Shown piece after piece: positions 3,801-40,541 of a stretch of DNA of 64,000 nt; within the stretch, counting starts at the first letter, position 1, and every line of letters begins with the position of its first letter. This DNA comes from Epithemia pelagica. Its lineage: Eukaryota > Protista > Bacillariophyta. The position numbers were made by a program, and so were the translations under genes. The notes under the pieces are model-generated. The model had not been told where the DNA came from. It worked only from the letters and a program-made list of their open reading frames with translations, and ran no database searches. The stretch lies in assembly GCA_946965045.2 (NCBI GenBank), contig OX337235.1, positions 2,232,001 through 2,296,000 of the forward strand, given 5' to 3'.

Positions 3801-6800
3801 GTTGGTACTCCCGCTGGTGTCATCCACGAATACTATCATAAAGACTTGGGCCTCAATCTCTCCTTGTGGGGAACGAAATGTCGCTCCATGAGCCTTTTCA
3901 TCGTAAGCATGGAAAAGTACCGAACTGATTACACACCATATTCCTGGAGAGTTTCTTGCTCCCTGTCCGGAGCCGTAGATTGGGAAAATTTTGCAGTGTT
4001 TGTAAAACTTCTCTGATACACCAAGTTGCGTCTTGAGGTAGTATTTTGCATCTTCTAGTGTTGCAGCATTGATAAATACTACTGATCGGTGCTGGCCATA
4101 GGATCGAGATGCTAGGCTGCCAAACGACATCACGATTCTGTCGTAGCACGCCGTTGCATCGTAGTCGAGGTGGACTAGCGGCCGTTTGCTCGCGCGGCTA
4201 ATCTCATATTGGAACTCTTCCAACATGGTTGGAAGGATGGCGTCTTTTCCTGGAACTCCACCGAACTGTTGTGGATGTAAAAGTTGATTGTTAGAACCGT
4301 TGCGTATCATCTGTCTCCATTTCACTGCTAAGATCAAGTTATAATCCTGTTCATACAGGTGTATAACTCTTAGACGGTGAATCCGATGATTGTTTGGTTC
4401 CTTCAATATCATCACGTTGACGATATCTTTCCATCGTGATAGGCTGTAGCGATGGCTGATAGCTAGATTGAGCATTGCCACTTGCCATTCGATGAGTTGT
4501 TGTTGTTGATGTTCCAATTGGATTGTTGTTTCTTTGTCATCTTCGATGGCGATGGGAGTGACTAGTGCCTTGCTATGTGAAAGATGGAATCCTGAAGGAG
4601 AAGTGGAAGTCTTTTCCGGCCATGATCGAATTTTCTCTTTCCACTCTTCTATTGTGATCGTGTCCTTGATTTCATCAAGGTTTGTGCGAGCTTGCATATG
4701 ATGCACCACGTCCTGAGTTACCGAGTCCAATTCGTTTGTATTCCACTGTCCCTCGAGAATGAGATCTGCTACATGAGTAGATGCGCCCCAATCTACCCAT
4801 TCTGAGAATGGCGGCCGGGTTGGGAACAAACCATCAGCTTGGCCGAAATGGGTTTGGTTGCGTTGTAGGAGACGACTCTCTATCTCTTCTGGTGTGTCAA
4901 TGCTAATCCAATCCACGCAAGACTTGTAGTTGACATCGTCAGGATCAGCCGGTACGTCCAGTCTCGTGATACCTGCTTTCTCAGCTCCTCGACATTGACA
5001 AATCTTTCTGTACATACTCTTGGTTCTTTCGGCTGCCATAAGGTTCTTGATAAGTTTAGCCTTTTTCTTGTTGCCTTTTGCTTCTGCGTCCTTAAGTTGT
5101 ATAAGTTGTTCATTCTGACGATGGAAGACGGCGTCTTTAGTTGATTGGCGGATCTGTTGTTGGATTTGTTTGCATAGTGTTTTACATTCGGCCAGAGTCG
5201 TTGGTATTTCGAAGTCTTCATCTTGTTCTCTGTATCTTGCGATCGCTTCTTCGAATGATCGTTTTAGTCGGATAGATGATATTGTCTTGAGTAACACGTT
5301 CTTTCGACGGCGTAGAGTTGCCAATTCCGACGAGAATGCTATGTTTCTAGGCTTTCTTGTACATTGTTTCGCTCCAAATATCCCGGCGCGTTGAAAGTCC
5401 CCATCAAGTTGTTCCTGCACCTGTGGTGTCCATAGAGTTTTAGCTCTCTCCAATCGTGTCCCGAAGTTATGTTCGCTAAGATAGCGGTGTTTTGCAGTGA
5501 TATACTGTCGAACAGCGACAGGGTCCTTTGCAGTGAATTCTCTGCAGGGCAATGGCGCTAAGGACTGGGTTTTGTTTCCAAAAAGAGCCAGGGTGTCCAA
5601 ATTGAGTATCATACCTCTGTGATCTCCGCTTCCTCGAAATTTAAAAGGTTCGTAGCAAGCTTGCCGAACAGCGTCTGCTACTCCTTCACTTGCCAGAATA
5701 AAGTCGATTCTCTCCTGTCCCATCACGTGTGTACCGAAGTCTGAGTATCCTATTTGTTGTTGCATCACATCCACCAGATTGCATTGCGATCCAAGTGCTG
5801 ACATTCCTTCGCCTGAGTCTGACATTGGCTCGTTGAAGTCTCCTAACAACAAAATTTCACATTGTTGGTCTTGGTATCGTAGGATAAATTCTTTCAGGTC
5901 CATTATGAATGCTTCTCGTGGGGATTCCTGTCGTCCTTGAACTAATAGCATGCTAGATTGCTGGGCTGATGCTGTATATGATCGGACTGTCGTGTTTCCG
6001 TCATTGTCGGTGTAAGTAATCGTCTGTTTACAGACTTGGTACGCTGCTACGACCAACAGCTTCTTGTTGTTCTTACAACTCATCAGTTGAAATGACCAGC
6101 GACCGAGTGAGTCGCTGCCTTGATCCATAATTCTGGCTGTAATACTGCCTTGTGAGCCCATGAGTGTTCCCCCTGGTTTGTAGTACCGTTTTCGTGCTGG
6201 TATGTTGCTGCTCCCGAACGTTGTTTTTGAGAATTCAAAGTGCTTTCTTGTGGTATTGTGGATGATATTCTTGACAGCGGATTTTGTCGAATCAATGTTG
6301 GTTTCCGCTAATCCCCAAGTGACGGCTTGTAGTTTTTGCATTTCTTCGCCGCATTTTCGCTGAGGGTGAATCCATTTATGTTGGCAAAGTAGATTCTGAA
6401 ACGATCTTCCTCTTTCTCATTTTCTTTAATTTCGTCCCCGATGAAAGGATTTGTTGCTAAATTTTCAGCCGCCGTTGTATTGTCCTCTGGAATGGTTGAG
6501 TTGATGCTGTTTTGTGAGCCACTATCTTGTGTCTGGCGTGTGTTATGATTGGTCGCGTGAGTGTCATCGTTTGTTTGTGTAGAGTCAGTTGCTTGTATGG
6601 AGTTGGTTGCTTGTCTAGTGTCTGTGGCTTGTCTGGTGTCAGTTGTTCTTCTAGGATTGATTGCTTGTCTGGTATCGGTTGCTTGTCTGGCATCAGTTGC
6701 TTGTCTGGAATCGGTTCCTGTGTTGGCATTTGTTGGACAATTTGTTGGTTGTGGTTCGTTGAGTAAATGTATTGTTGTTGATTTTTCTAAGCTATTCAGT

Positions 6801-29861: not shown

Positions 29862-32800
29862 TTTATCTCAAAAGCAGCTGGTGATATGTCTGCGTCACCA
29901 CCCGCCAAATGGATGAGTTCCTTCTTATCCACGTATTTCTGGAGATCAGTACATTTTCGAATGAATTTAACCTTTCGCCTTGTGTTTGCGGAACCCACGA
30001 ATCCTGAAAGGGCTATCATGCCTCCAAGTGCTGTACGCCCACCGCGTGGTGCACCATGCCCCTTCACGACGAGTGCCCGGTAGAGGCGCTCAGGATAATG
30101 AAGCATTACAAGCTTTATAAGTCGTTTGAGCATTGGGTCGTTTGAGTGGACATAATACTTCTCAGATTCGGGCACTCTTGGGTTGTCAAAATTCTCTGCT
30201 CCTTTCGGCGCCATAATTTGGATATCCTCGGCGGGAAATTCTTCGAAGTGATCTTCTTCCTCTCCATTGGTGTCGAGGTCATCTGCGCCGACTGAATCCT
30301 GTTGTGCCGCTGATTCCTCAAATGATTCTTGGCTTGCTACCGATCCTGCGTTTGTAATATCGGTTGCCGATTTCTTCTTCTGAGGCTTTCCCGTGAGAAC
30401 AATCAGTGTACATCTAACGTCCGGGTCTTCTCTCGCATAGTGCACCATGCTTTGTTCCAGACGATGCACGACAGCGGCAATAACGGCATCTTCGTCTCCC
30501 CGCCATGGTCCTTTGAGCATTTGGCGAAAATAAAACACAGGGCGACCACCGAGGTCGCGTCCTTGTTGAAAGAACTGACCCGTTTGGAGCTCCACCCGGC
30601 ACGTTCGCGCATCAATAGGAAATGTGAGACCTCGCCACGCAGCACTCTCCACAATTCGAACTGTTGCCTTTTTCAGGCTGCAGTTTGAAGCGACAAAGAA
30701 TCGCAAGAGGTCGTTCCGATTGACGACACGTAGAATTGAGACTTGACGCAGGTCTCTTCGTACTTCTAATGCCTCTTGTGCAGACGGTGCACTCCCCAGA
30801 GGAACAACGGGGCGGGTGCCGGTTCTCCCGTGGGTTAGAACGGCACCAAGTTGGACATCATCTCTAATCGGAATCCGTACATCGGCCAAAAGTTCAATGA
30901 GCTTATTTACTGCGAGGTCAAATGGTTCACTGGTGGCAATAAGTTGAGGCTTTCGACCACGGTAGTTTTCATTCAATGGTTCGTCATGAAAAGAATCGAC
31001 TACGGTTTGTTGTAATGCCTCTGTATTGGAGATACCGACGGCTTCTGCGCACGCTCGAGCCACTGCCACACATGGATCAAGAAGCAATCCTCTTGCCAAT
31101 ACATTAAGCTTACCAGGTATTTCAGCGTTTGGATTGGACAGAGTAAGCTGACTGATACGGTGTCCACTGTAAAAGGCGCATTGGGTAGTCAAGGCAATTT
31201 GGTAGTGACTAACTTGAACGAATCTGTAGGCACATAAAATCCGTTCCGGTAGTTCACTCTCATCTTCACCTCGTATTTTGACAGACAAGTCTGCAACTTC
31301 CCGAGCTAGGTTGTTGGCGGTGATGAAGGTGATCACCAAGCGTCCAGCCAATGTGCACCATCGTTGCGGATCCACTGGAAACGACAGGAGACGGAACCAA
31401 TGTCAGAGTTTGAAGCGCTGAGAGGTTGTTGTTAGAGTGCTGCCTTGAAGGACCAGTTACCCCACTTACCGTTGCAATTGACTGCTACATAATTTGTGGG
31501 AGAATGGCGTCCGTCCACAAGAGCGCCACCAAAGTGGTGACACGACCCAAAGTATTCAGCTTTCATGGCTGGGAGTGCATATCGATCCGAGAAGGTATAA
31601 TACGAAGGAGACACGGAGGACGACTGTGTCACAAATCCTTTGTAATCCAAAAGCCACAACAAAATGGTCATGAGATGCATGAACAGCGCCTGTAGGAGTG
31701 GGAATCTAAATGTGGTCAAGTCTAATTGAAGCAAAAACTCAAGTCTTTGTTGCCTGAATGCTTCATCACCGCCTTTGAACCGTTCCCATACTGTGTCAAA
31801 GCTTGGATCGACGCCAACAGGCATGTTGCGCGCAAAGACAGAGACATTCACAACTCCAATGGTTTTGATATGCATCGCCTTGACAAAAAAGTCCACATCC
31901 GGATTGTTTTCCACTAATTCGCGAAGGGACGGGATCGATTGGACTGGGTCCGTGTAGACATTGATGCGTGCGTCGCCTTCGGCAGGCAAATTGAACATGT
32001 GCGATCCCACCAAGGAGAAGGTTTGGCCCAGACTGAAGACTGATTCACCGACTTGACTGGTCCAACTCCACCATTTGCGATCCGGAAATTTGATCCCTCG
32101 CACTCGACAAAAGATATCGCGGGACACGTAAGGTTCATAGTATTCGTTTTTAGCAGTTCGATCACGCGCTTGGTTATCAATATTCATATCATAGGCCAAT
32201 CGGAATTTCCAATACCCGTCTGGTGGTTTGTCAAATCCAAGTCTCCAGCCAATATTTACCAGTTGACGAGCTCTCGCGTAACTTTGTACCAGTAGCGACG
32301 CTCGAGCCACACGTTTTCTCCACTGCAAAAGATGTTGCATTCGTTCAATATCCGAGGTAGTGTAGGGAATGGCATCAACCGGCATAATTGGAACAAAGAG
32401 TCGGAAAAAGTCAACGGGCCCCAAAAGTACTCGCTTGCTAATATATTCGGAGGAAAACCCTGCAACGCCATCGTCTGATGATGCATTCCCTGCGTCGTTT
32501 GGTGGCTGCTGTGTTTGTGGATCACTAGATGGTCCACTGCTGGGTTTGCCTTGTCCAGTATTGGTCGTTGCACCAGTATTGGTCGCGGTAGTTGCCTCAT
32601 CCGAGGGAGATGTTTTACGATGAGGCTTGGTTTCATTCCACCAAAGCTCTTCTAAATGCCGTCGGATCCCAGGAAATGTCGATCCAAAACATCGCATCAC
32701 GTCATCCCATGCCACTCCGACGGCGATACAGTGATCCTTGGCCTCTCCGTACTGATTTACATTGTCATCGTGAAGGACACACTCGGGTCCATCATGAGCT

Positions 32801-34275
32801 AGAGATCCTTGATGAATCAAGCGAAACACATGATGCATATTTTGAATGGTGGTACCCATCAGTTGTGTAGCCAGCAAGTCGGTCTGGAACTGAGCCGCGG
32901 CTTGAGCAGATTGAAAGGTATTTTCCATCCATTCCGATTTGGGTGAATTCTTGACGTAGACTTCCAATACTCCTTCTGTTGGTGGTGTGGGATGAACGGA
33001 AAATTCCGTCACGTGCAAGCAAAATTCATGGGCGTCCCCTGCACCACCACCGCGAGTGGCTTTGGGAGAGTGTGCCATGACATCGTCCTGGGACCCAGTC
33101 AAGGATGAGGATCCGCGTTTGGATGACGGCGAGGACGACGATTCTCCAGCGCCGTCGGAGATGGTCAAGGTTGGCGGTCGATGCAGTAAGTTGACCTTGA
33201 GCGTCCGACGCAAGGAATTAACATCACGTGGAAACACGCGCCGAGCTGCTTCCGCCCATGGTGGGGGTGGTGTCCATGTATGGTACACCATACTGGAAGT
33301 GTGAGGTCCATAGAGAATTGCCGCGCACTCTAGGTGGTGCAAATGATGTTGTTGTTGGGGCTGTTGCTGTGGTTGCAGCATGTGGTATGAGATGGCATGT
33401 TGGGAGGTCCAAGTTCCATATCCTTGAGTAGAAGATAGAGAGGGGAGCCCTAGATGAGGTTGTTGCTGCTGTGGCTCTACCATGGGTTGTTGTCGATGAC
33501 GGTCCAAACTATGCAAGTCATCTGTATCTTCTCTCTCCCCCTCTTCCTCCCGCGCCCAATGCAAGATCGGAAACCTATCATGACCACCCAAACCTCGGGT
33601 AGCGGCACCATTGAGATTCATGTTGCTTTGGTGTTTGTGTATGGTTTTGTCTGAAGACCATTTGGATCGTCCTCCCGTGAGAGGATGATACTCCTTGGAT
33701 GGTAACCTCCCACGTCCTCGTCGAATATTCGTCAAAGATCGAATACTGCTGGTATCATCCAGAGAACTAGACATGTTACTTTCTGTCCGTCCACGGCGAC
33801 CACCACCACCATTCGGAACCAACAGCATCACGTTGGGATCCTGGTCGGTCGTGCGTTGGTCTTGCCGACGTTTTTCGCGTCGAATCATCCATATGACAAT
33901 TGTGAACAACACCAAACAAAACAAAACGTGATGCTCCATTTTTTGAGATGCTTGTATGGGTTGTTCCCAAAAGGAATGGACAAGCCCCTTTCCATGGAGA
34001 ACACTGGTTCCACTGCTGCTTGATAGATCTCTTTCAACAGGAAGGCTAGCACAACTTTTCGAGGACAGAGGACACGATAGCTCGTCCAGGCTATCGTCGA
34101 TTGATGATGGATCCGTTTCTGTTGCTGAGGCGGCTGTCGCCTCTTGTATCTCATTGTCGCTTTCCGGAGAAGCTTCGTTCGAGTTCGCGGTCGGCAGTCG
34201 GTTGCTGGCATCATCGTCCACCGTGTTTGGAACGGATCCACTTCCTCTCTCCATCTCTCGAAACAGTAGATCCAC
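29858..34275 (-). CDS. large membrane-anchored lipid-transfer protein: TM, PH-like region, EDR2_C(DUF1336)-like, CRAL-TRIO; intron 31375-31469
   Basis: A GTAAGT...TTTCCAG intron (95 bp) fuses ORFs 31432-34275 and 29858-31375 in frame (NCN-V-DPQRW). CRAL-TRIO: LLRFFVAS, QGRDLGGRPVFYF, HYPERLYR. EDR2_C-like: FKGGDEAFRQQRLEF. Confidence 0.72.
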
Positions 34276-34735
34276 ACTCGCAACAAACTAGAAGACCCTG
34301 CTTTTCAATGGGGTATCCTCATGAGAGCTCCTGCAGACGACTTTGTCCTCTGTCTAAAAGAATCTTCCATGAAAGATTGGAAACAGAAGAAAAATGGAGT
34401 CTCCTAAAAACGGGGGGGATTCGTGGTATTGGGGGCGGATGTATTGCGAAAGGAGTCATGAATGTGACGTAGGTCCTGTCCGCGTCATCGGAACATCCTT
34501 TTGCGCCTGGGACACCCGCTACTTTGGTAGCGGTATGGACTTTTCCGCTTTCATAGTAGTCTTCCTATTCAGTACAGTGTGATTTCAGCGACTACCTACA
34601 ATACAATGAGAATTGTACTTAAGAATTCGATTTCCGTTGATTACAAGTATTTATGAGACTTGATCTTGCTTCAAGACCAACATTTATTATGACCGTTAAT
34701 ATAGGGTTTCGCCAAAAAAAGCCTTGACCTGCTGG

Positions 34736-34905
34736 CTCGAAACAATGTCGAAACCACGACACAACGTCGAAACAAAGTCGAAACAAAGTCGAAACAAAGT
34801 CGAAACAAGGTCGCAACAAAGTCGAAACAACCCGAAACCAACCGAAACAAAGTCGAAACAAAGCCGAAACAAACCAAAACAAACTCGAAACAAAGTCGAA
34901 ACCAA
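34736..34905 (+). repeat. left tandem array, ~16 degenerate units of GTCGAAACAAA
   Basis: Directly readable; ends GTCGAAACCAAGCC immediately before ATG 34909. Confidence 0.95.
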
Positions 34906-34908
34906 GCC

Positions 34909-35505
34909 ATGCCGCCACGAAGGTCTGAGTGGATTGACTGGCGTCGCAGTGCAGCACGAGCCGTCCTTATTCGAGATCTTGAGCCAGGCGGTCTCCTTCA
35001 CAGCATGGATGCAGTTCCGGCTGACCACTTGTTTGTGTTCTACAAGAAGCTTCCCGAGTTTGCGAATGTTCCTTTCGATCAATTCAAGGAACGACTGAAG
35101 GACCACCGCAAGCAATCAAACAACGCGCAGGAATTGGTGGACCGTGACCACAAGGCGCACCATGTTGACCGTCACGTCCATCCAAGAAAGGACCGGAACT
35201 GCCGTGGAGAGCTGGTCTTCGACGTCCATCCAGCAAAGAAGCTTCTCCGGATGGACGTGGCCAATGGCGTTCACTTGAAATTGACGCCCATGGCACTGAG
35301 GAAGACGCGTCCCGCCTATATGGCATTCAAGCTAAAAATCTTCAAGTTTCGAATCTACCAAGAAGTGAGACGAGTGCGCTACTTCAACTACTTGCGGCTC
35401 AAGGAAGAGGAAGCCAAACAGAAGCTCAATCTACCTGCTGTCTCTCCAATGGACGAATTGATGCGACGCCGAGAACTTGCAAACCACATCCTAGCCTACA
35501 AGTAA
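34909..35505 (+). CDS. cassette ORF A (198 aa), two internal ~55-aa repeats, putative DNA-binding partner of the transposase
   Basis: WRRSAARAVLIRDL...PEF..V....FKERL aligns with FDVHPAKKLLRMDV...PAY..F....FKFRI. Confidence 0.7.
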   Translation: MPPRRSEWIDWRRSAARAVLIRDLEPGGLLHSMDAVPADHLFVFYKKLPEFANVPFDQFKERLKDHRKQSNNAQELVDRDHKAHHVDRHVHPRKDRNCRGELVFDVHPAKKLLRMDVANGVHLKLTPMALRKTRPAYMAFKLKIFKFRIYQEVRRVRYFNYLRLKEEEAKQKLNLPAVSPMDELMRRRELANHILAYK

Positions 35506-35553
35506 AACATAGTAGAAAACCAAATCTCAACTACATTGAATTTATGGATGAAT

Positions 35554-36546
35554 CTACGGCTCAAATAGGAGACTTGTGCCATTGTCAAGTGCATACTGAA
35601 CTGTCACAGCGACTGCACGAAATGCTATGCCGTGTTTCTCGTCCGAATGCCTCCATGTCTGGTTGAGGCATCCAAAAGTAGCCATTTTTCCATTGAAACT
35701 TTCATGCCGAAGACGGATCCGGCTCTTGAGGTTATTGGCTTGTTTGGAATCTTCATGGGGATTAGGCCAGGATATTTTCCCACTGTACTCCTTCTTAATG
35801 TACCCACGATCAGCCACAATCAATTTGCCTGGCTTGAGTCGTTCCAACACGCCGGACCGTTCGAGCATCTCCAAGTCCCCCATTCCCCCACGCACGGGGC
35901 CATATATGTGAACACACCTCGGTCGATGTGCCGCCAAAACAATTTGATATTTCAGAGCACCGTGCGCATGCTTGTGAGAGCAGTTCCCACGATCGAACGG
36001 AAGCATTTGAGTCTTGTGCTTGCGCTCGAAAACTTTTTTGTCGACACCATCCACGGACAACACATTAACCTCAGACTCGGGACTGTCAAGAATTCTCGGC
36101 CAGAAAATTACCTTCTTCTGGAGAAACGCAATTTTTCGAATCCACCCCCACAAATGCTCTCCTCTCGCATAGCACTCACACATGTCAAAGCGATCACTGA
36201 GCTGCTCACTATTTCTCGTGTAGTTGTAGAGGAAAAAGTGTGCAACCATGAACATCTTGAATCCTCCTCTTTTGATTTCATTCGTAGATAGTAGTTCCTC
36301 GCCATTGTCGTCTGTTGCGTGGCATAGGTCGAACCATTGCGCAGCAATCACCAACGGGTGAGACCCGTAGTGCTTCGTAAACTTGAGTCGTCGTCGTTCC
36401 AATGTCAATTTGCCCGCATCATCCACATGAAGAAGCCGTAGGCCCCTTTCGAGGACTTCCGACGGTTGAAGAAACATTCTTTGATTGTTGAAAATGTGGT
36501 GACGAATGCAATGATGGATTCTTGGGGACAAGAACTCTATTGGCAC
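35554..36546 (-). CDS. cassette ORF B: DDE_Tnp_4 (Harbinger/ISL2EU-like) transposase catalytic domain, 330 aa
   Basis: LSVDG (D), SHKHAHGALKYQI, IVADRGY (D), RLRHESFNG (E), WRH...H..AF.AVAV; triad intact. Confidence 0.88.
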   Translation of the reverse strand: MPIEFLSPRIHHCIRHHIFNNQRMFLQPSEVLERGLRLLHVDDAGKLTLERRRLKFTKHYGSHPLVIAAQWFDLCHATDDNGEELLSTNEIKRGGFKMFMVAHFFLYNYTRNSEQLSDRFDMCECYARGEHLWGWIRKIAFLQKKVIFWPRILDSPESEVNVLSVDGVDKKVFERKHKTQMLPFDRGNCSHKHAHGALKYQIVLAAHRPRCVHIYGPVRGGMGDLEMLERSGVLERLKPGKLIVADRGYIKKEYSGKISWPNPHEDSKQANNLKSRIRLRHESFNGKMATFGCLNQTWRHSDEKHGIAFRAVAVTVQYALDNGTSLLFEP

Positions 36547-36901
36547 TCGGGAAGGTCACTCACTAGTAGGTAGGTTTCTGTCTTCTGTCACAAAAGTGTT
36601 CAATAACTCCACGCCTGTCTCACACGGCGGGGGACCCCCATGATTAGGACCCGTGGGAAGTAGGAGAGACACATGATGCGCCTGCAGATTCACGAGTTCT
36701 CAACTCGTGAGCACAAGCATAGAAGGCTGCGCCTAAATAGACATCCTATTACATATGCACATGACAATCAAACAATGTTTATTTGTTATCCATTGATGTA
36801 GATGCCAAACCAGGATTGGCAATCTCGGTAGGTAGACGACTCACTCGCTCGATCCCACCAGGAGATTGTTTTCTCTCCGTTTGCCCATTCGACAAACAAA
36901 C

Positions 36902-38344
36902 ATGGAGATCTCACAAGACGAACTTTCGCAAATCAACGAAGAGGAAGATTGGGTTGTTGACTCTGTCAACAGTGAGGCCCAAGATCAGCAAGAACAACCG
37001 TCGATTGGAACCTTGCAACGAAAGAAGCCGGCGCCAGGTGGATTGAGTGCTGAGAAAACCAAGACCCTCCTTGAAGCCTTTGAACTGTCCGGGGAGACAA
37101 GGGAATCATTCGACCTCTGGGCACTGTGTTCAGCCAACCCGACCACATTTGGAGCCGAAGGAACCGTGCTTCGCAGGCAAGTGCAGCAACGTTGGGCAAA
37201 GTGCAAGGGCCGCTCAATCAGGGCCTACATTGCATACTTGAAAAAGATTGGTGTGACACCCGGTCCCAAAAGCCTCGAAGAGATGAACAAGAAACCAGCC
37301 TACCCCGACAAACCAGCCTTCTCCGACAACGCGTCGACCGCACCGTCCACCTCTGATGAAGAGATCATCGTTCCCGACGAAGAAGAAGAAGACCCATATG
37401 CGATGGTTGGGATTGGAAATCCCTTTGCAAATGACAACGTGGACCAGCTTGAAGCAGACTTTGGCCAGGTTTCTCTTGCCGACGACAGGAAGCCTGCTGC
37501 AAGGGCCAGCGTCCCATCTCTCCCAGCGGCCCAAAACCAAGAAGCTGTGAGGATGTTTCACACTCCACCCCGTCCTGTTGCGCATGCTGGTGGCTTTAAC
37601 CCTGGCCAACAACAGCATCGCTTCGGACGCCTTTCTCCTCTTGTTGCCCAGGCCGCCCGTACCAACGTGGCACATGCCTTTGTACCCACTGCCTGGTTTG
37701 TGAACCAGAACGGTACAGTCAAGAATCCATGGGTGATTCCGATCTGTCTAGACAAGATGGCCGAGCGACACCGCGAGTTCGATGTCCAGTTCGTCGAAAA
37801 TATCAACCAAGACGGATTTTTCACTCGCAGCGGTTTTCACATCCGCCGGCCCGTTGCCTGCCCGGATATGAACGACTGGGAAGCGGACATCCCAACGGAC
37901 GACTACGACGAGATGTGGAGAGGACGACTCATCCGTTTCAGGGGCCCCGCTCAAGATTTTTGGATTCGTGATACGGAGCGCTACCATACGGGGATTGGCA
38001 GGGAGTCGAAGATCAAGTGTGACGCAACTTTCAACGCACACAGTGCGACTGAGGTTGCGATTGAAGAGTCCAAAGAACACTGGCGTGCTAGTGCCTACTG
38101 GATCATGGTTTTCCCACCCGGCGTTCAGCTTGAGAACAAGATTTTCTCGTTGGACGATAACATCGTGCCAGTCACCAAGAACCCTCTCAAGCTAAAGAAG
38201 GACCACCCAGAAAACCTCTTCGGCAAAGAAATCCTGGCCATGACCCTGTTTTGGCGCATTGCTCTCAAGGGAGGCAAAAAGATTGGTGGTAAGCAATCTG
38301 AGAAGAAGAAGGAGGCCGAGGCCAAGAGCATGTTTGAAGACTAA
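36902..38344 (+). CDS. cassette ORF C (~480 aa), unknown; helical N-domain, acidic linker, beta-rich C-domain
   Basis: Intact ORF from ATG 36902, divergent from the transposase. Confidence 0.65.
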   Translation: MEISQDELSQINEEEDWVVDSVNSEAQDQQEQPSIGTLQRKKPAPGGLSAEKTKTLLEAFELSGETRESFDLWALCSANPTTFGAEGTVLRRQVQQRWAKCKGRSIRAYIAYLKKIGVTPGPKSLEEMNKKPAYPDKPAFSDNASTAPSTSDEEIIVPDEEEEDPYAMVGIGNPFANDNVDQLEADFGQVSLADDRKPAARASVPSLPAAQNQEAVRMFHTPPRPVAHAGGFNPGQQQHRFGRLSPLVAQAARTNVAHAFVPTAWFVNQNGTVKNPWVIPICLDKMAERHREFDVQFVENINQDGFFTRSGFHIRRPVACPDMNDWEADIPTDDYDEMWRGRLIRFRGPAQDFWIRDTERYHTGIGRESKIKCDATFNAHSATEVAIEESKEHWRASAYWIMVFPPGVQLENKIFSLDDNIVPVTKNPLKLKKDHPENLFGKEILAMTLFWRIALKGGKKIGGKQSEKKKEAEAKSMFED

Positions 38345-38428
38345 CCAGTACGCCCCTAGTAATTGACTACATAGTAAAAGCGAATTCTTTGTTTGAAATG
38401 CACTACTCCTATTAGTTATTCATGTATG

Positions 38429-38887
38429 CTAATGCTGTCCCTTGAACTTGATGCGACGCCAGCGGGCCTTTTCATTGGGTAAGGCATTCTGTGCAGCAAT
38501 GGCTCTATTGAGGTATGACAAGAACAGAGTTGCAACTCGTTTTCCTCCTTCTCCTGATCCTGAGATCTCCTCGAACTCAGCCATTTTCCTTGTGAGCACC
38601 ATGAACATCTCCATAATGTCTGTATTCTCAAAAAGCATTGCCTCCTCCTTGTTTGATGGGAGCTGGACATCAGCCTCCATCACAAAACTTGTGTGTAGAA
38701 TCCTTGTTGCCTTCAGAACCGTAGGACTTGTTTTCACTTGGATGATCACATACGTGTAGAGGCGAGTGCATTCCTTCGCCGTGTCCACCCATGCTCGCAA
38801 TCCCTTGTAGTCTCCCAGCACAATCTTGATCCTTGCCCCCTTTCTTTCATTGATGGGTGGAAGATTGGACGATTTCTTCTCCACCAT
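38429..38887 (-). CDS. cassette ORF D (152 aa) with KOW/SH3-like motif
   Basis: GARIKIVLGDYKGLRAWV fits a KOW-like pattern; intact ORF convergent with ORF C. Confidence 0.6.
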   Translation of the reverse strand: MVEKKSSNLPPINERKGARIKIVLGDYKGLRAWVDTAKECTRLYTYVIIQVKTSPTVLKATRILHTSFVMEADVQLPSNKEEAMLFENTDIMEMFMVLTRKMAEFEEISGSGEGGKRVATLFLSYLNRAIAAQNALPNEKARWRRIKFKGQH

Positions 38888-39027
38888 ATTTGTCTTGTCT
38901 GTTGCTTTGTTTTATGACTGTCCCTGCAGTGAACAAGAATCTCCCCTCTCACTCGCTCGAGTCGCTCATCGTGCCACCATTAGCGACATTGAGCGACCAT
39001 GGTTGATTATTGTGTTCGCCATCATGG

Positions 39028-39145
39028 GTCGAAACAAACCGAAACAAAGTCGAAACAAAGTCGATACCAACCGAAACAAGCCGAAACAAAGTCGACACAA
39101 GGTCGAAACAAAGTCGAAACAAAGTCGAAACAAAGTCGAAACCAG
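39028..39145 (+). repeat. right tandem array, ~11 units of GTCGAAACAAA, same orientation as the left array
   Basis: Directly readable; ends GTCGAAACCAGCC. Confidence 0.95.
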
Positions 39146-39740
39146 CCGTTAAATACGGGACCAACCCGAAACAAGACATGACACAAACTCAAAACATTTA
39201 GCGATTATCCCAATCCACGACTCAGTTGCGACATCGAAAAACAAATTGTTAACTTAATTATTTGATTTAAGCACGTGTCGTTACATTACTATAATAAGAG
39301 TACAGAAAATAAAGCTAGCTAGCTAAAACAGCGATCAGCCCTAGCTACCCAGTTGCCGGAATAGGTAAAATTCTCTAGTGGGAACCAAAATCACGGGTGT
39401 CCCTGATGGTCCGCAACGTCGACAAGATGACACTCGTAGCAGTGGCTCGTAACAGGTAGAAATGTAGCTTAAACTGTTGACCTCTATAGATACAATCAAT
39501 TAGCATCCAAATAGACGACTAGTAGAAGATTCATTAGCAACCGAATAAGATTGAGTCGCAGAACTAGTAGCTACAGAGTTTAAAAATTTGTCCAAGACCC
39601 AAGACATAGAGTTGGTGTGAGCGACTCGGGGATCAGCACATAAAGAAGGCAGAATCATTGCTAAGAAGGCTGAAGCTAAAAATTCAAACCGGGATATTAA
39701 ATAAATGGTCATGGATCAGTCCTACTTACTACGTGCTCTA

Positions 39741-40030
39741 CCGTTTAGCTCTGATCTGCCGTTTAGCTCCGATCTGCCGTTTAGCTCCGATCTGCCGCTT
39801 AGCTCCGATCTGCCGCTTAGCGCCTTTCTGCCGTTTAGCGCCTTTCTGCCGTTTAGCGCCTTTCTGCCGTTTAACGCCTCCTAGTACAAAATCCTACGTG
39901 TTTTCTCGTAGCTCCTTCCGTTTAGCGCCTTTCTTCCGTTTAGCTCCGATCTGCCGCTTAGCTCCGATCTGCCGCTTAGCTCCGATCTGCCGTTTAGCTC
40001 CAATCTGCCGTTTAGCTCCAATCTGCCGTT
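39741..40030. repeat. 18-bp minisatellite in two blocks (CCGTTTAGCTCCGATCTG / CCGTTTAGCGCCTTTCTG), ~7+6 units
   Basis: Blocks 39741-39875 and 39918-40030 with a ~40-bp spacer. Confidence 0.92.
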
Positions 40031-40541
40031 TTGAGTTTTCAGCTTATCCTCATTATTTGGCTAGCTTCATCGTAGCTAATCCTATGTTGTGTGTGTGTCG
40101 TTTGTCTCCATCTCATTTTTTATTCTATCAGTGCATTGGTTTGTTGTGTCACATAGCAGTGCATAGCACACGAAGGGCTGAGGATTGAGGATGCACACCG
40201 ATCACAATTAGCTACGTAGATAAAGAATAACATTGCCCTAAATCAATGAACATGGATCACACTCAATCGTGATCTTGATAGTTTCTATTATCTTATTCTA
40301 GCTAGCTTAGCAGTTTGGTTCCACATCACGGTGGGTTGGATGATTTGGGATTTTGGTTTGCCATTTGCCATCCAATTCTCGACCCAGAACGCAAAACGCA
40401 ATTTCGCGGTGTTCCATCACAGCGAAATTCCGATGTTGGTCGCACTTGCATCGGAAGGAGAAAGGTATCCAACACACGCATCTTTGATGTTGTAGTTGGG
40501 AATCTCTCGATGATCGCCTGTACCTCCTAATACGTTTCACC

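Follow-up and report, generated by a model that had tools for sequence, protein, structure and literature searches.

Harbinger-type transposons are the standard example of a transposon that works with two proteins, and they have given rise to domesticated pairs such as HARBI1/NAIF1 and HDP1/HDP2. We describe here an element of this type from the diatom Epithemia pelagica, located in a 64,000-nucleotide stretch of genomic DNA (assembly GCA_946965045.2, contig OX337235.1, positions 2,232,001 to 2,296,000 of the forward strand), and this whole stretch is referred to below as the window. The element combines a DDE_Tnp_4-type transposase gene (B) with three further genes (A, C and D) and two subterminal arrays of short tandem repeats, and it is almost certainly a complete cut-and-paste transposon of the PHIS (Harbinger-type) group. 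With Harbinger3_DR and the canonical PIF/Harbinger elements it shares the type of transposase and a 3-bp target-site duplication; the canonical transposase depends on a separate DNA-binding partner encoded by the element, which binds short repeated subterminal motifs (PMC9710019), and in Harbinger3_DR this partner is a Myb-like protein with a subterminal target motif of 9 bp (Sinzelle et al. 2008, summarized in PMC9710019). Canonical elements, however, duplicate TWA and have one Myb/SANT/MADF partner, whereas in the present element the duplication is CWG, the three partners are unclassified, and each end has a head-to-tail array of 11–16 units, the two running in one direction.

The closest known kind appears to be the NuwaI group of PHIS, as judged by end features, the domain-poor transposase and size. 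NuwaI elements have a 5'-CWG-3' duplication, terminal inverted repeats (TIRs) of 12–61 bp that usually start with GGG, and two open reading frames (ORFs) (Han et al. 2015, PMC4482050); the second ORF encodes a Myb/SANT protein, and the group has been reported from animals only (PMC4482050). The CWG duplication, TIRs of 19–20 nt starting with GG(G), an element length of ~4.5–4.9 kb and a compact DDE transposase without any other recognizable domain are common to both, but the diatom element has three partners and no detectable Myb/SANT domain. PHIS elements with more than one gene besides the transposase are also on record. HarbingerS of oomycetes carries a SET domain, PHISTA of rust fungi carries TET/JBP and a non-Myb third protein, and the diatom family Harbinger4_TP has been placed beside the PHISTA lineage, near Nuwa (PMC12730594). 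The present element resembles them in its PHIS-type transposase with more than one further gene and, like the third protein of PHISTA, its extra proteins lack a recognizable Myb/SANT domain. However, the extras of HarbingerS and PHISTA are enzymes recognizable as modifiers of chromatin or DNA, and the target duplication of PHISTA is TA, whereas the three found here are small, belong to unnamed families and comprise a tandem of three-helix modules, a protein with a helical and a CS/HSP20-like part, and a KOW-like protein. Subterminal motifs occur in other TIR transposons as well, including the 12-bp TnpA motif of En/Spm, AAACGG of Ac and the TnsB sites of Tn7. There, as here, multiple short motifs lie inside unequal ends and are separate from the cleavage sequence, but those motifs are scattered or bidirectional, whereas in the present element they form tight arrays of one direction at nearly helical pitch. 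No description of the four-gene set or its arrays was found in a limited full-text literature search.

The limits of the element were established by alignment of its genomic copies. The window's own assembly (60.5 Mb in 23 contigs) contains eight copies with 98–100% identity over 4.4 kb, four of which are practically identical. Their co-alignable region corresponds to window 34509–39403, and nothing outside it is common to them when 1.5-kb flanks are included, which places the element at 34510–39402 (4,893 bp). These limits lie ~227 bp (left) and 260 bp (right) outside the two arrays and are formed by imperfect TIRs of 19–20 nt. The inverted-repeat arms (34509–34528 and 39384–39403) are 20 nt long and 85% complementary, the left arm being GGGACACCCGCTACTTTGGT, and the TIRs start with GGGACACCC if the G common to the target duplication is included. 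The first-pass annotation of this locus saw no clear TIR because its coordinates (34736–39145) stopped at the arrays; both the TIRs and the 3-bp duplication lie beyond them, at the limits of copy similarity. The duplication is CWG around six copies, with CTG on both sides here and CAG on both sides of five others. The TIRs of the copies are ordinary, and the duplicated triplet is CWG (CTG/CAG), not TAA/TTA.

Further evidence for transposition comes from an empty site and from shortened derivatives. The left flank (34210–34509) has one other genomic match, on contig 18, which abuts the copy of the right flank there. Judged by hit coordinates only, a single CTG joins the two matches (99% for the left flank, 93% for the right), its TG being the whole of their overlap, and contig 18:801125–802236 thus represents a paralogous empty site that lacks both the 4,893-bp insertion and the 3-bp duplication. 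Two gene-less derivatives, one of 1,781 bp (L026:1275–3055, contig 10; target-site duplication CAG) and one of ~3.2 kb (L028/L030, contig 16, about 2967638–2970846; CAG duplications), have family 1 TIRs and both co-oriented arrays, and their interiors, which contain ATCAACC 7-bp repeats, are unrelated to the element. Segmental duplication of all copies is disfavoured because the flanks are unrelated, and by all sequence indications the element has been very recently active. The early suggestion of a domesticated derivative does not hold in view of the near-identical copies, target duplications, empty site and non-autonomous derivatives. A HARBI1-like domesticated gene is single-copy, immobile and without TIRs or duplication, a description that does not apply to eight copies at 98–100% identity with TIRs and duplications.

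B is the sole ORF of the four with a Pfam match (DDE_Tnp_4, PF13359; E=1.9e-11, 44.2 bits versus a cutoff of 24.8), and its motif columns SVDG, DRGY and RHESFNG (D, D, E) are invariant in six families. The reading frame is open over 35554–36546 on the minus strand, giving 330 amino acids from a GTG at 36546, but the start is most likely the ATG at 36477 (307 amino acids), a codon shared by six families. We considered but rejected an additional exon of B upstream of it, as the conserved ATG directly precedes the conserved block in all families. The hallmarks of PHIS and PIF/Harbinger elements that are present are thus a DDE_Tnp_4 transposase with an intact D-D-E triad, TIRs and a short target duplication, and the one that is missing is a second ORF with a Myb/SANT/MADF domain. 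The initial reading of a multi-gene PHIS-group element is upheld, the DDE_Tnp_4 gene being accompanied by A, C and D. A Pfam scan revealed no recognizable sequence-specific DNA-binding domain in B beyond the usual N-terminal region; B would therefore require a partner.

The four intact ORFs alternate in orientation (A+, B−, C+, D−) with gaps of 48, 355 and 84 bp, and these coordinates were reproduced. When the genome was searched in six frames with each protein, all four genes fell together in 33 of 54 position clusters, in two architectures. The first, A+ B− C+ D−, is that of the element's family and of relatives with B at least 61% identical. The second, termed type II, is D− B+ C− A+ (for example contig 9:2306608–2310685, contig 17:3081808–3085864 and contig 3:785322–789410), and its proteins have diverged to identities of 39–44% for B, 31–49% for A, 23–29% for C and 27–31% for D. 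On an environmental metagenome contig, C is followed by a convergent D. The ratios of non-synonymous to synonymous substitution (dN/dS) between the element's family and a subfamily, 1b, are 0.11–0.16 for A, 0.10–0.12 for B, 0.08–0.15 for C and 0.05 for D, by which measure all four genes are under purifying selection.

Tandem Repeats Finder delimits the left array at 34737–34906 (period 11, 16.0 copies, score 193) and the right array at 39028–39142 (period 11, 10.7 copies, score 160). The core CGAAACA occurs 19 times in forward and not at all in reverse orientation within the element, and both arrays terminate in GTCGAAACCA(A)GCC, the left one abutting the ATG of A. The final 117 bp of the left array match the right array in register (86% identity), and no similarity was found between the rest of the left and right subterminal regions. 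Unit number is stable over all eight copies, at 15–16 on the left and 10–12 on the right. What was first reported of these structures, two 11-bp arrays of ~16 and ~11 units with the same orientation and a common ending, was reproduced throughout. Successive units lie 11 or 10 bp apart, except for a single 8-bp step, and the mean spacing is 10.6 bp (left) and 10.7 bp (right). The accompanying proposal of helical-turn phasing agrees with these values for the element's own family but fails across the clade, where relatives use 10-bp and in one case 8-bp units. Helical phasing thus does not appear to be a clade-wide property, and the mechanism proposed below is not built on it.

Related families for which the A-side end was read were surveyed for similar structures. 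A subterminal short-period array was present in every family inspected, and its unit was family-specific. The unit is GTCGAAACAAA in the element's family and GTCGAAACCAA in subfamily 1b, and related families have the 10-bp units CCGATACAAC and GGAAACAAGT and the 11-bp unit TTCACATCTTC. Family 4 uses the 10-bp unit ATCCACA/TGTGGAT in both orientations, and in one type II family (L058, L059) 27–28 perfect copies of the 8-bp unit TTTGTGGA lie between A and the element end. The TIR tip GGGACACCC, by comparison, is conserved in families 1, 1b, 2 and 4 and in a type II element, and so is the CWG target. Since the array of type II elements is downstream of A, the array tracks the element end and not the gene. 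Both arrays remain co-oriented in subfamily 1b. At base seven, 13/16 and 9/11 units of the element's family have A, and 10/12, 12/14, 7/10 and 11/11 units of subfamily 1b have C, and on this comparison both arrays have altered the same unit position in concert between the subfamilies.

On balance, we consider that the arrays probably function as cis-acting protein-binding sites for transposition. A different role, in transcription, is suggested by the left array, which stops exactly at the ATG of A and might drive this gene or form its 5' leader, and by the shared GTCGAAACCA(A)GCC junction and the register of the right array with the 3' two-thirds of the left, which resemble a duplication; the right array would then drive an outward or antisense transcript. 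Such control or leader elements are nevertheless rather unlikely as the explanation of both arrays, given that the type II array is downstream of A and next to the element end, that the gene-less derivatives retain both arrays, and that the right array is directed away from D with no coding sequence after it, although roles in transcription and as transposition sites are not mutually exclusive. We regard it as unlikelier again that the arrays are functionless minisatellites that arose by replication slippage in AT-poor subterminal DNA and hitch-hike with the element. The units are indeed short and degenerate (80–84% matches in Tandem Repeats Finder), vary slightly in number from copy to copy (15–16 left, 10–12 right) and turn over rapidly in sequence between families. 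Slippage would not, however, readily explain a subterminal position that stays constant despite complete unit turnover and rearranged gene order, a change of unit in concert on the left and right, or the retention of arrays in derivatives without any genes.

If the arrays are protein-binding sites, the candidates for binding them are the partner proteins. A is a basic protein (pI 10.2) with 30 database relatives, mostly from environmental assemblies. Neither A nor its relatives match any Pfam family even at E≤10, a profile search of PDB sequences was also empty, and the viral contigs scanned with A gave no match. Its AlphaFold2 model, which has a mean pLDDT (the predicted local-confidence score) of 91.4, contains two tandem helix–helix–long-helix modules, and the sequence gives only weak support for an internal repeat (E 0.014 over 32 columns). 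In an exhaustive structural comparison (VIA) the model gave Z scores of 4.5–6.1 to FF, DNA-bound homeodomain and Myb/SANT/GARP domains, with whole domains of 58–72 residues superposed at a root-mean-square deviation of 2.4–3.2 Å. In one database model the left array is translated as part of the N-terminus of A, a reading that was rejected because the relatives start at a conserved Met.

C has a conserved N-domain that is basic and helical (residues ~47–130), an acidic, low-complexity variable linker and a conserved beta-rich C-terminal domain (~260–470). It has five database relatives and only two metagenome loci, and C and its relatives have no Pfam match even at E≤10 and none among PDB sequences by profile. 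The model has a pLDDT of 80–91 in the N-domain and 45–78 in the C-terminal domain. Nearly all of the top 24 matches of this low-confidence C-terminal model are HSP20/alpha-crystallin/CS/p23 beta-sandwiches (Z 4.8–6.9), and the N-domain gave weak matches to TrpR, Reb1, Rap1 and PHR2 (Myb-type and TrpR-type; Z 4.3–4.8). D, with 74 representative relatives at E≤0.001, is basic in its N-terminal half, where there is a weak KOW-like signal, and helical in its C-terminal half. The KOW Pfam family is matched by 6 of 54 D members (best E 0.0012), the D profile reaches ribosomal uL24 chains at E 0.12, and no consistent Pfam family other than this weak KOW signal was found among the relatives of D. Foldseek searches of the PDB with the models of A and C gave no match at E≤0.001, the ESM Atlas gave sub-threshold leads only, for C and D, and profile–profile comparison revealed no relation between A and C. 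We therefore treat the fold resemblances, which come from models for A and C and from sequence for D, as leads and not as assignments. The first-pass description of three non-Myb partners stands at the level of sequence, where there is no match to Myb/SANT or any other Pfam family, but is less clear-cut at the level of the models, in which A and the N-domain of C weakly resemble Myb domains.

A, C and D might instead be host genes captured as cargo, with no role in transposition and serving, for example, to counter silencing or benefit the host. They lack sequence likeness to known transposition proteins, and PHIS elements do acquire cargo such as SET or TET/JBP genes (PMC12730594). However, the three genes stay with the transposase down to 23–31% identity (C and D) and through rearrangement of gene order. 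The initial question of whether they co-occur with the DDE gene and the arrays was answered in the affirmative, as they were together in every related family examined. Hits of A or C apart from the other genes in the genome clusters are short fragments only, and the genome searches showed no full-length copy of A, C or D standing alone in the manner of a host gene. The need of B for a partner, in the absence of a recognizable DNA-binding domain of its own, also speaks against mere cargo. Retention through deep divergence and rearrangement therefore favours a function within the element over passenger status, and we consider the capture of host genes as cargo improbable. A TIR-less or domesticated PHIS derivative with iteron-like arrays, an early idea that drew on co-oriented direct repeats spaced near one helical turn (10.6–10.7 bp), has next to nothing left in its favour beyond the repeats themselves, for there are TIRs, CWG duplications, eight young copies, an empty site and mobile derivatives, no replication initiator (Rep-like) gene among the four ORFs in a Pfam scan, and relatives with 8-bp or 10-bp units.

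Returning to the arrays as binding sites for transposition, we propose that B would recognize and cut the conserved TIR tips, and that both arrays would be multi-site landing pads for an accessory DNA-binding protein encoded by the element. This protein would mark the element's 'own' ends, thereby providing family specificity, and recruit or position B. The candidate binders are A, which is basic and, with two three-helix modules, could provide about one protein per 10–11-bp unit, or the basic helical N-domain of C; the modelled fold makes A a tentative choice as array binder. Protein–protein adaptors could be provided by D, with its KOW-like signal, and by the CS/HSP20-like part of C. Since the arrays have the same direction, the ends are not mirror images and the transposition complex is probably asymmetric. 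By analogy, this scheme would extend the single documented case, that of Harbinger3_DR. In its fullest form it would be a four-protein transposition machine of a kind undescribed for PHIS, in which one-sided filaments of A or C on the arrays are coupled by the CS/HSP20-like C and the KOW-like D to a tip-reading transposase, the array is a fast-evolving identity tag against cross-mobilization by sister families, and co-orientation makes the two ends functionally different; that all of these parts hold together is unlikely.

Several points weigh against the proposed scheme. Subterminal sites in direct orientation are unusual for TIR elements, the units of family 4 are in both orientations, and both ends were inspected only in families 1 and 1b and two derivatives. 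The left array adjoins the ATG of A, as it might if it served as a promoter or leader. Between families whose array units differ, the long helices of A hardly vary, and A may read the ACA core common to all units, or the TIR, instead of the family-specific part. The structural matches of A and C all have Z scores under 7, below the level of a reliable fold match, and the model of the C-terminal domain of C is of low confidence. Membership of the Nuwa clade is indicated by end features only.

The retention of three partners that are not recognizably Myb proteins through deep divergence and rearrangement suggests that partner requirements among PHIS elements are more varied than the two-ORF definition allows. 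A conserved cleavage tip combined with fast-changing arrays provides a testable model for how sister families avoid mutual mobilization. Furthermore, a young element with four near-identical copies, a clean empty site and natural mini-elements could be turned into a transposon tool native to its host alga.

Features of the element, in window coordinates, with the basis for each or a remark on it
Feature	Position	Strand	Basis or remark
Left target-site duplication, CTG	34507..34509	.	identical trinucleotide after right end
Left TIR (GGACACCCGCTACTTTGGT)	34510..34528	+	start of copy alignment
Left subterminal spacer, TIR to array	34529..34736	.	present in 8/8 copies; without similarity to right spacer
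Left array, 16 units of GTCGAAACAAA	34737..34908	+	Tandem Repeats Finder and unit spacing
Gene A, 198 aa, candidate DNA-binding accessory protein	34909..35505	+	ORF, database relatives, model
Gene B, DDE transposase, 307 aa	35554..36477	-	Pfam DDE_Tnp_4; conserved ATG
B–C intergenic region between divergent genes, presumed promoters	36478..36901	.	promoter role inferred
Gene C, 480 aa	36902..38344	+	ORF, relatives, model
Gene D, 152 aa	38429..38887	-	ORF, relatives
Right array, 11 units, orientation and unit as in left array	39028..39147	+	Tandem Repeats Finder and unit spacing
Right subterminal spacer	39148..39383	.	within copies; two more isolated CGAAAC-like units at 39167 and 39190
Right TIR	39384..39402	-	copy alignment and arm complementarity
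Right target-site duplication, CTG	39403..39405	.	copy comparison and empty site

The B–C intergenic region (36478..36901) contains no ORF with relatives, and in the genome search it did not align with subfamily 1b at the DNA level.

The transposon lies ~235 bp upstream of the start of a 947-amino-acid ORF (window 31432–34275, minus strand) with low-complexity Gln/Ser-rich stretches, and the insertion may influence the promoter of this ORF. To judge by the empty site on contig 18, the region upstream of the ORF is part of a duplicated segment. The DNA to the right of the element (window 39404–40300) also belongs to a repeat, of which there are more than 20 copies (75–94% identity), and contains an 18-bp tandem array at 39737–40031. 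Many copies of this repeat adjoin a distant DDE_Tnp_4 gene (B-like, ~34% identity), and many of the alignments begin at the first base past the insertion. A second copy of the element (L006, contig 8, ~267 kb downstream) adjoins another copy of the right-flank repeat at the same terminal CWG, in the opposite orientation. These positions may reflect a landing preference for the ends of other Harbinger-type elements.

Close neighbours were also seen among the related families. In the merged loci L012 and L009 (contig 9), reverse-complemented, the right end of a subfamily 1b element and the left end of a family 2 element are 7 bp apart at 6276–6298 (CAG-G-CAG), with one base between them when the duplications are excluded. 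At L040, a family 2 copy sits in a CAG within another TIR-like sequence, GGACACCCAG. Directly upstream of the full copy at 1948421 on contig 5 is an isolated fragment of six right-type array units (L007:913–969), which is probably a remnant of an older, deleted element.

Copies of subfamily 1b are located at contig 5:954270–958789 (L010/L011) and contig 9:3213009–3217578 (L009/L012), and in both of them C has a stop or a frameshift. Their divergence from the element's family is mosaic, the A–B half having a dS of ~0.6 and 79–82% DNA identity and the C–D half a dS of ~1.7–3.9 and 74% DNA identity, a pattern that suggests recombination between element lineages.

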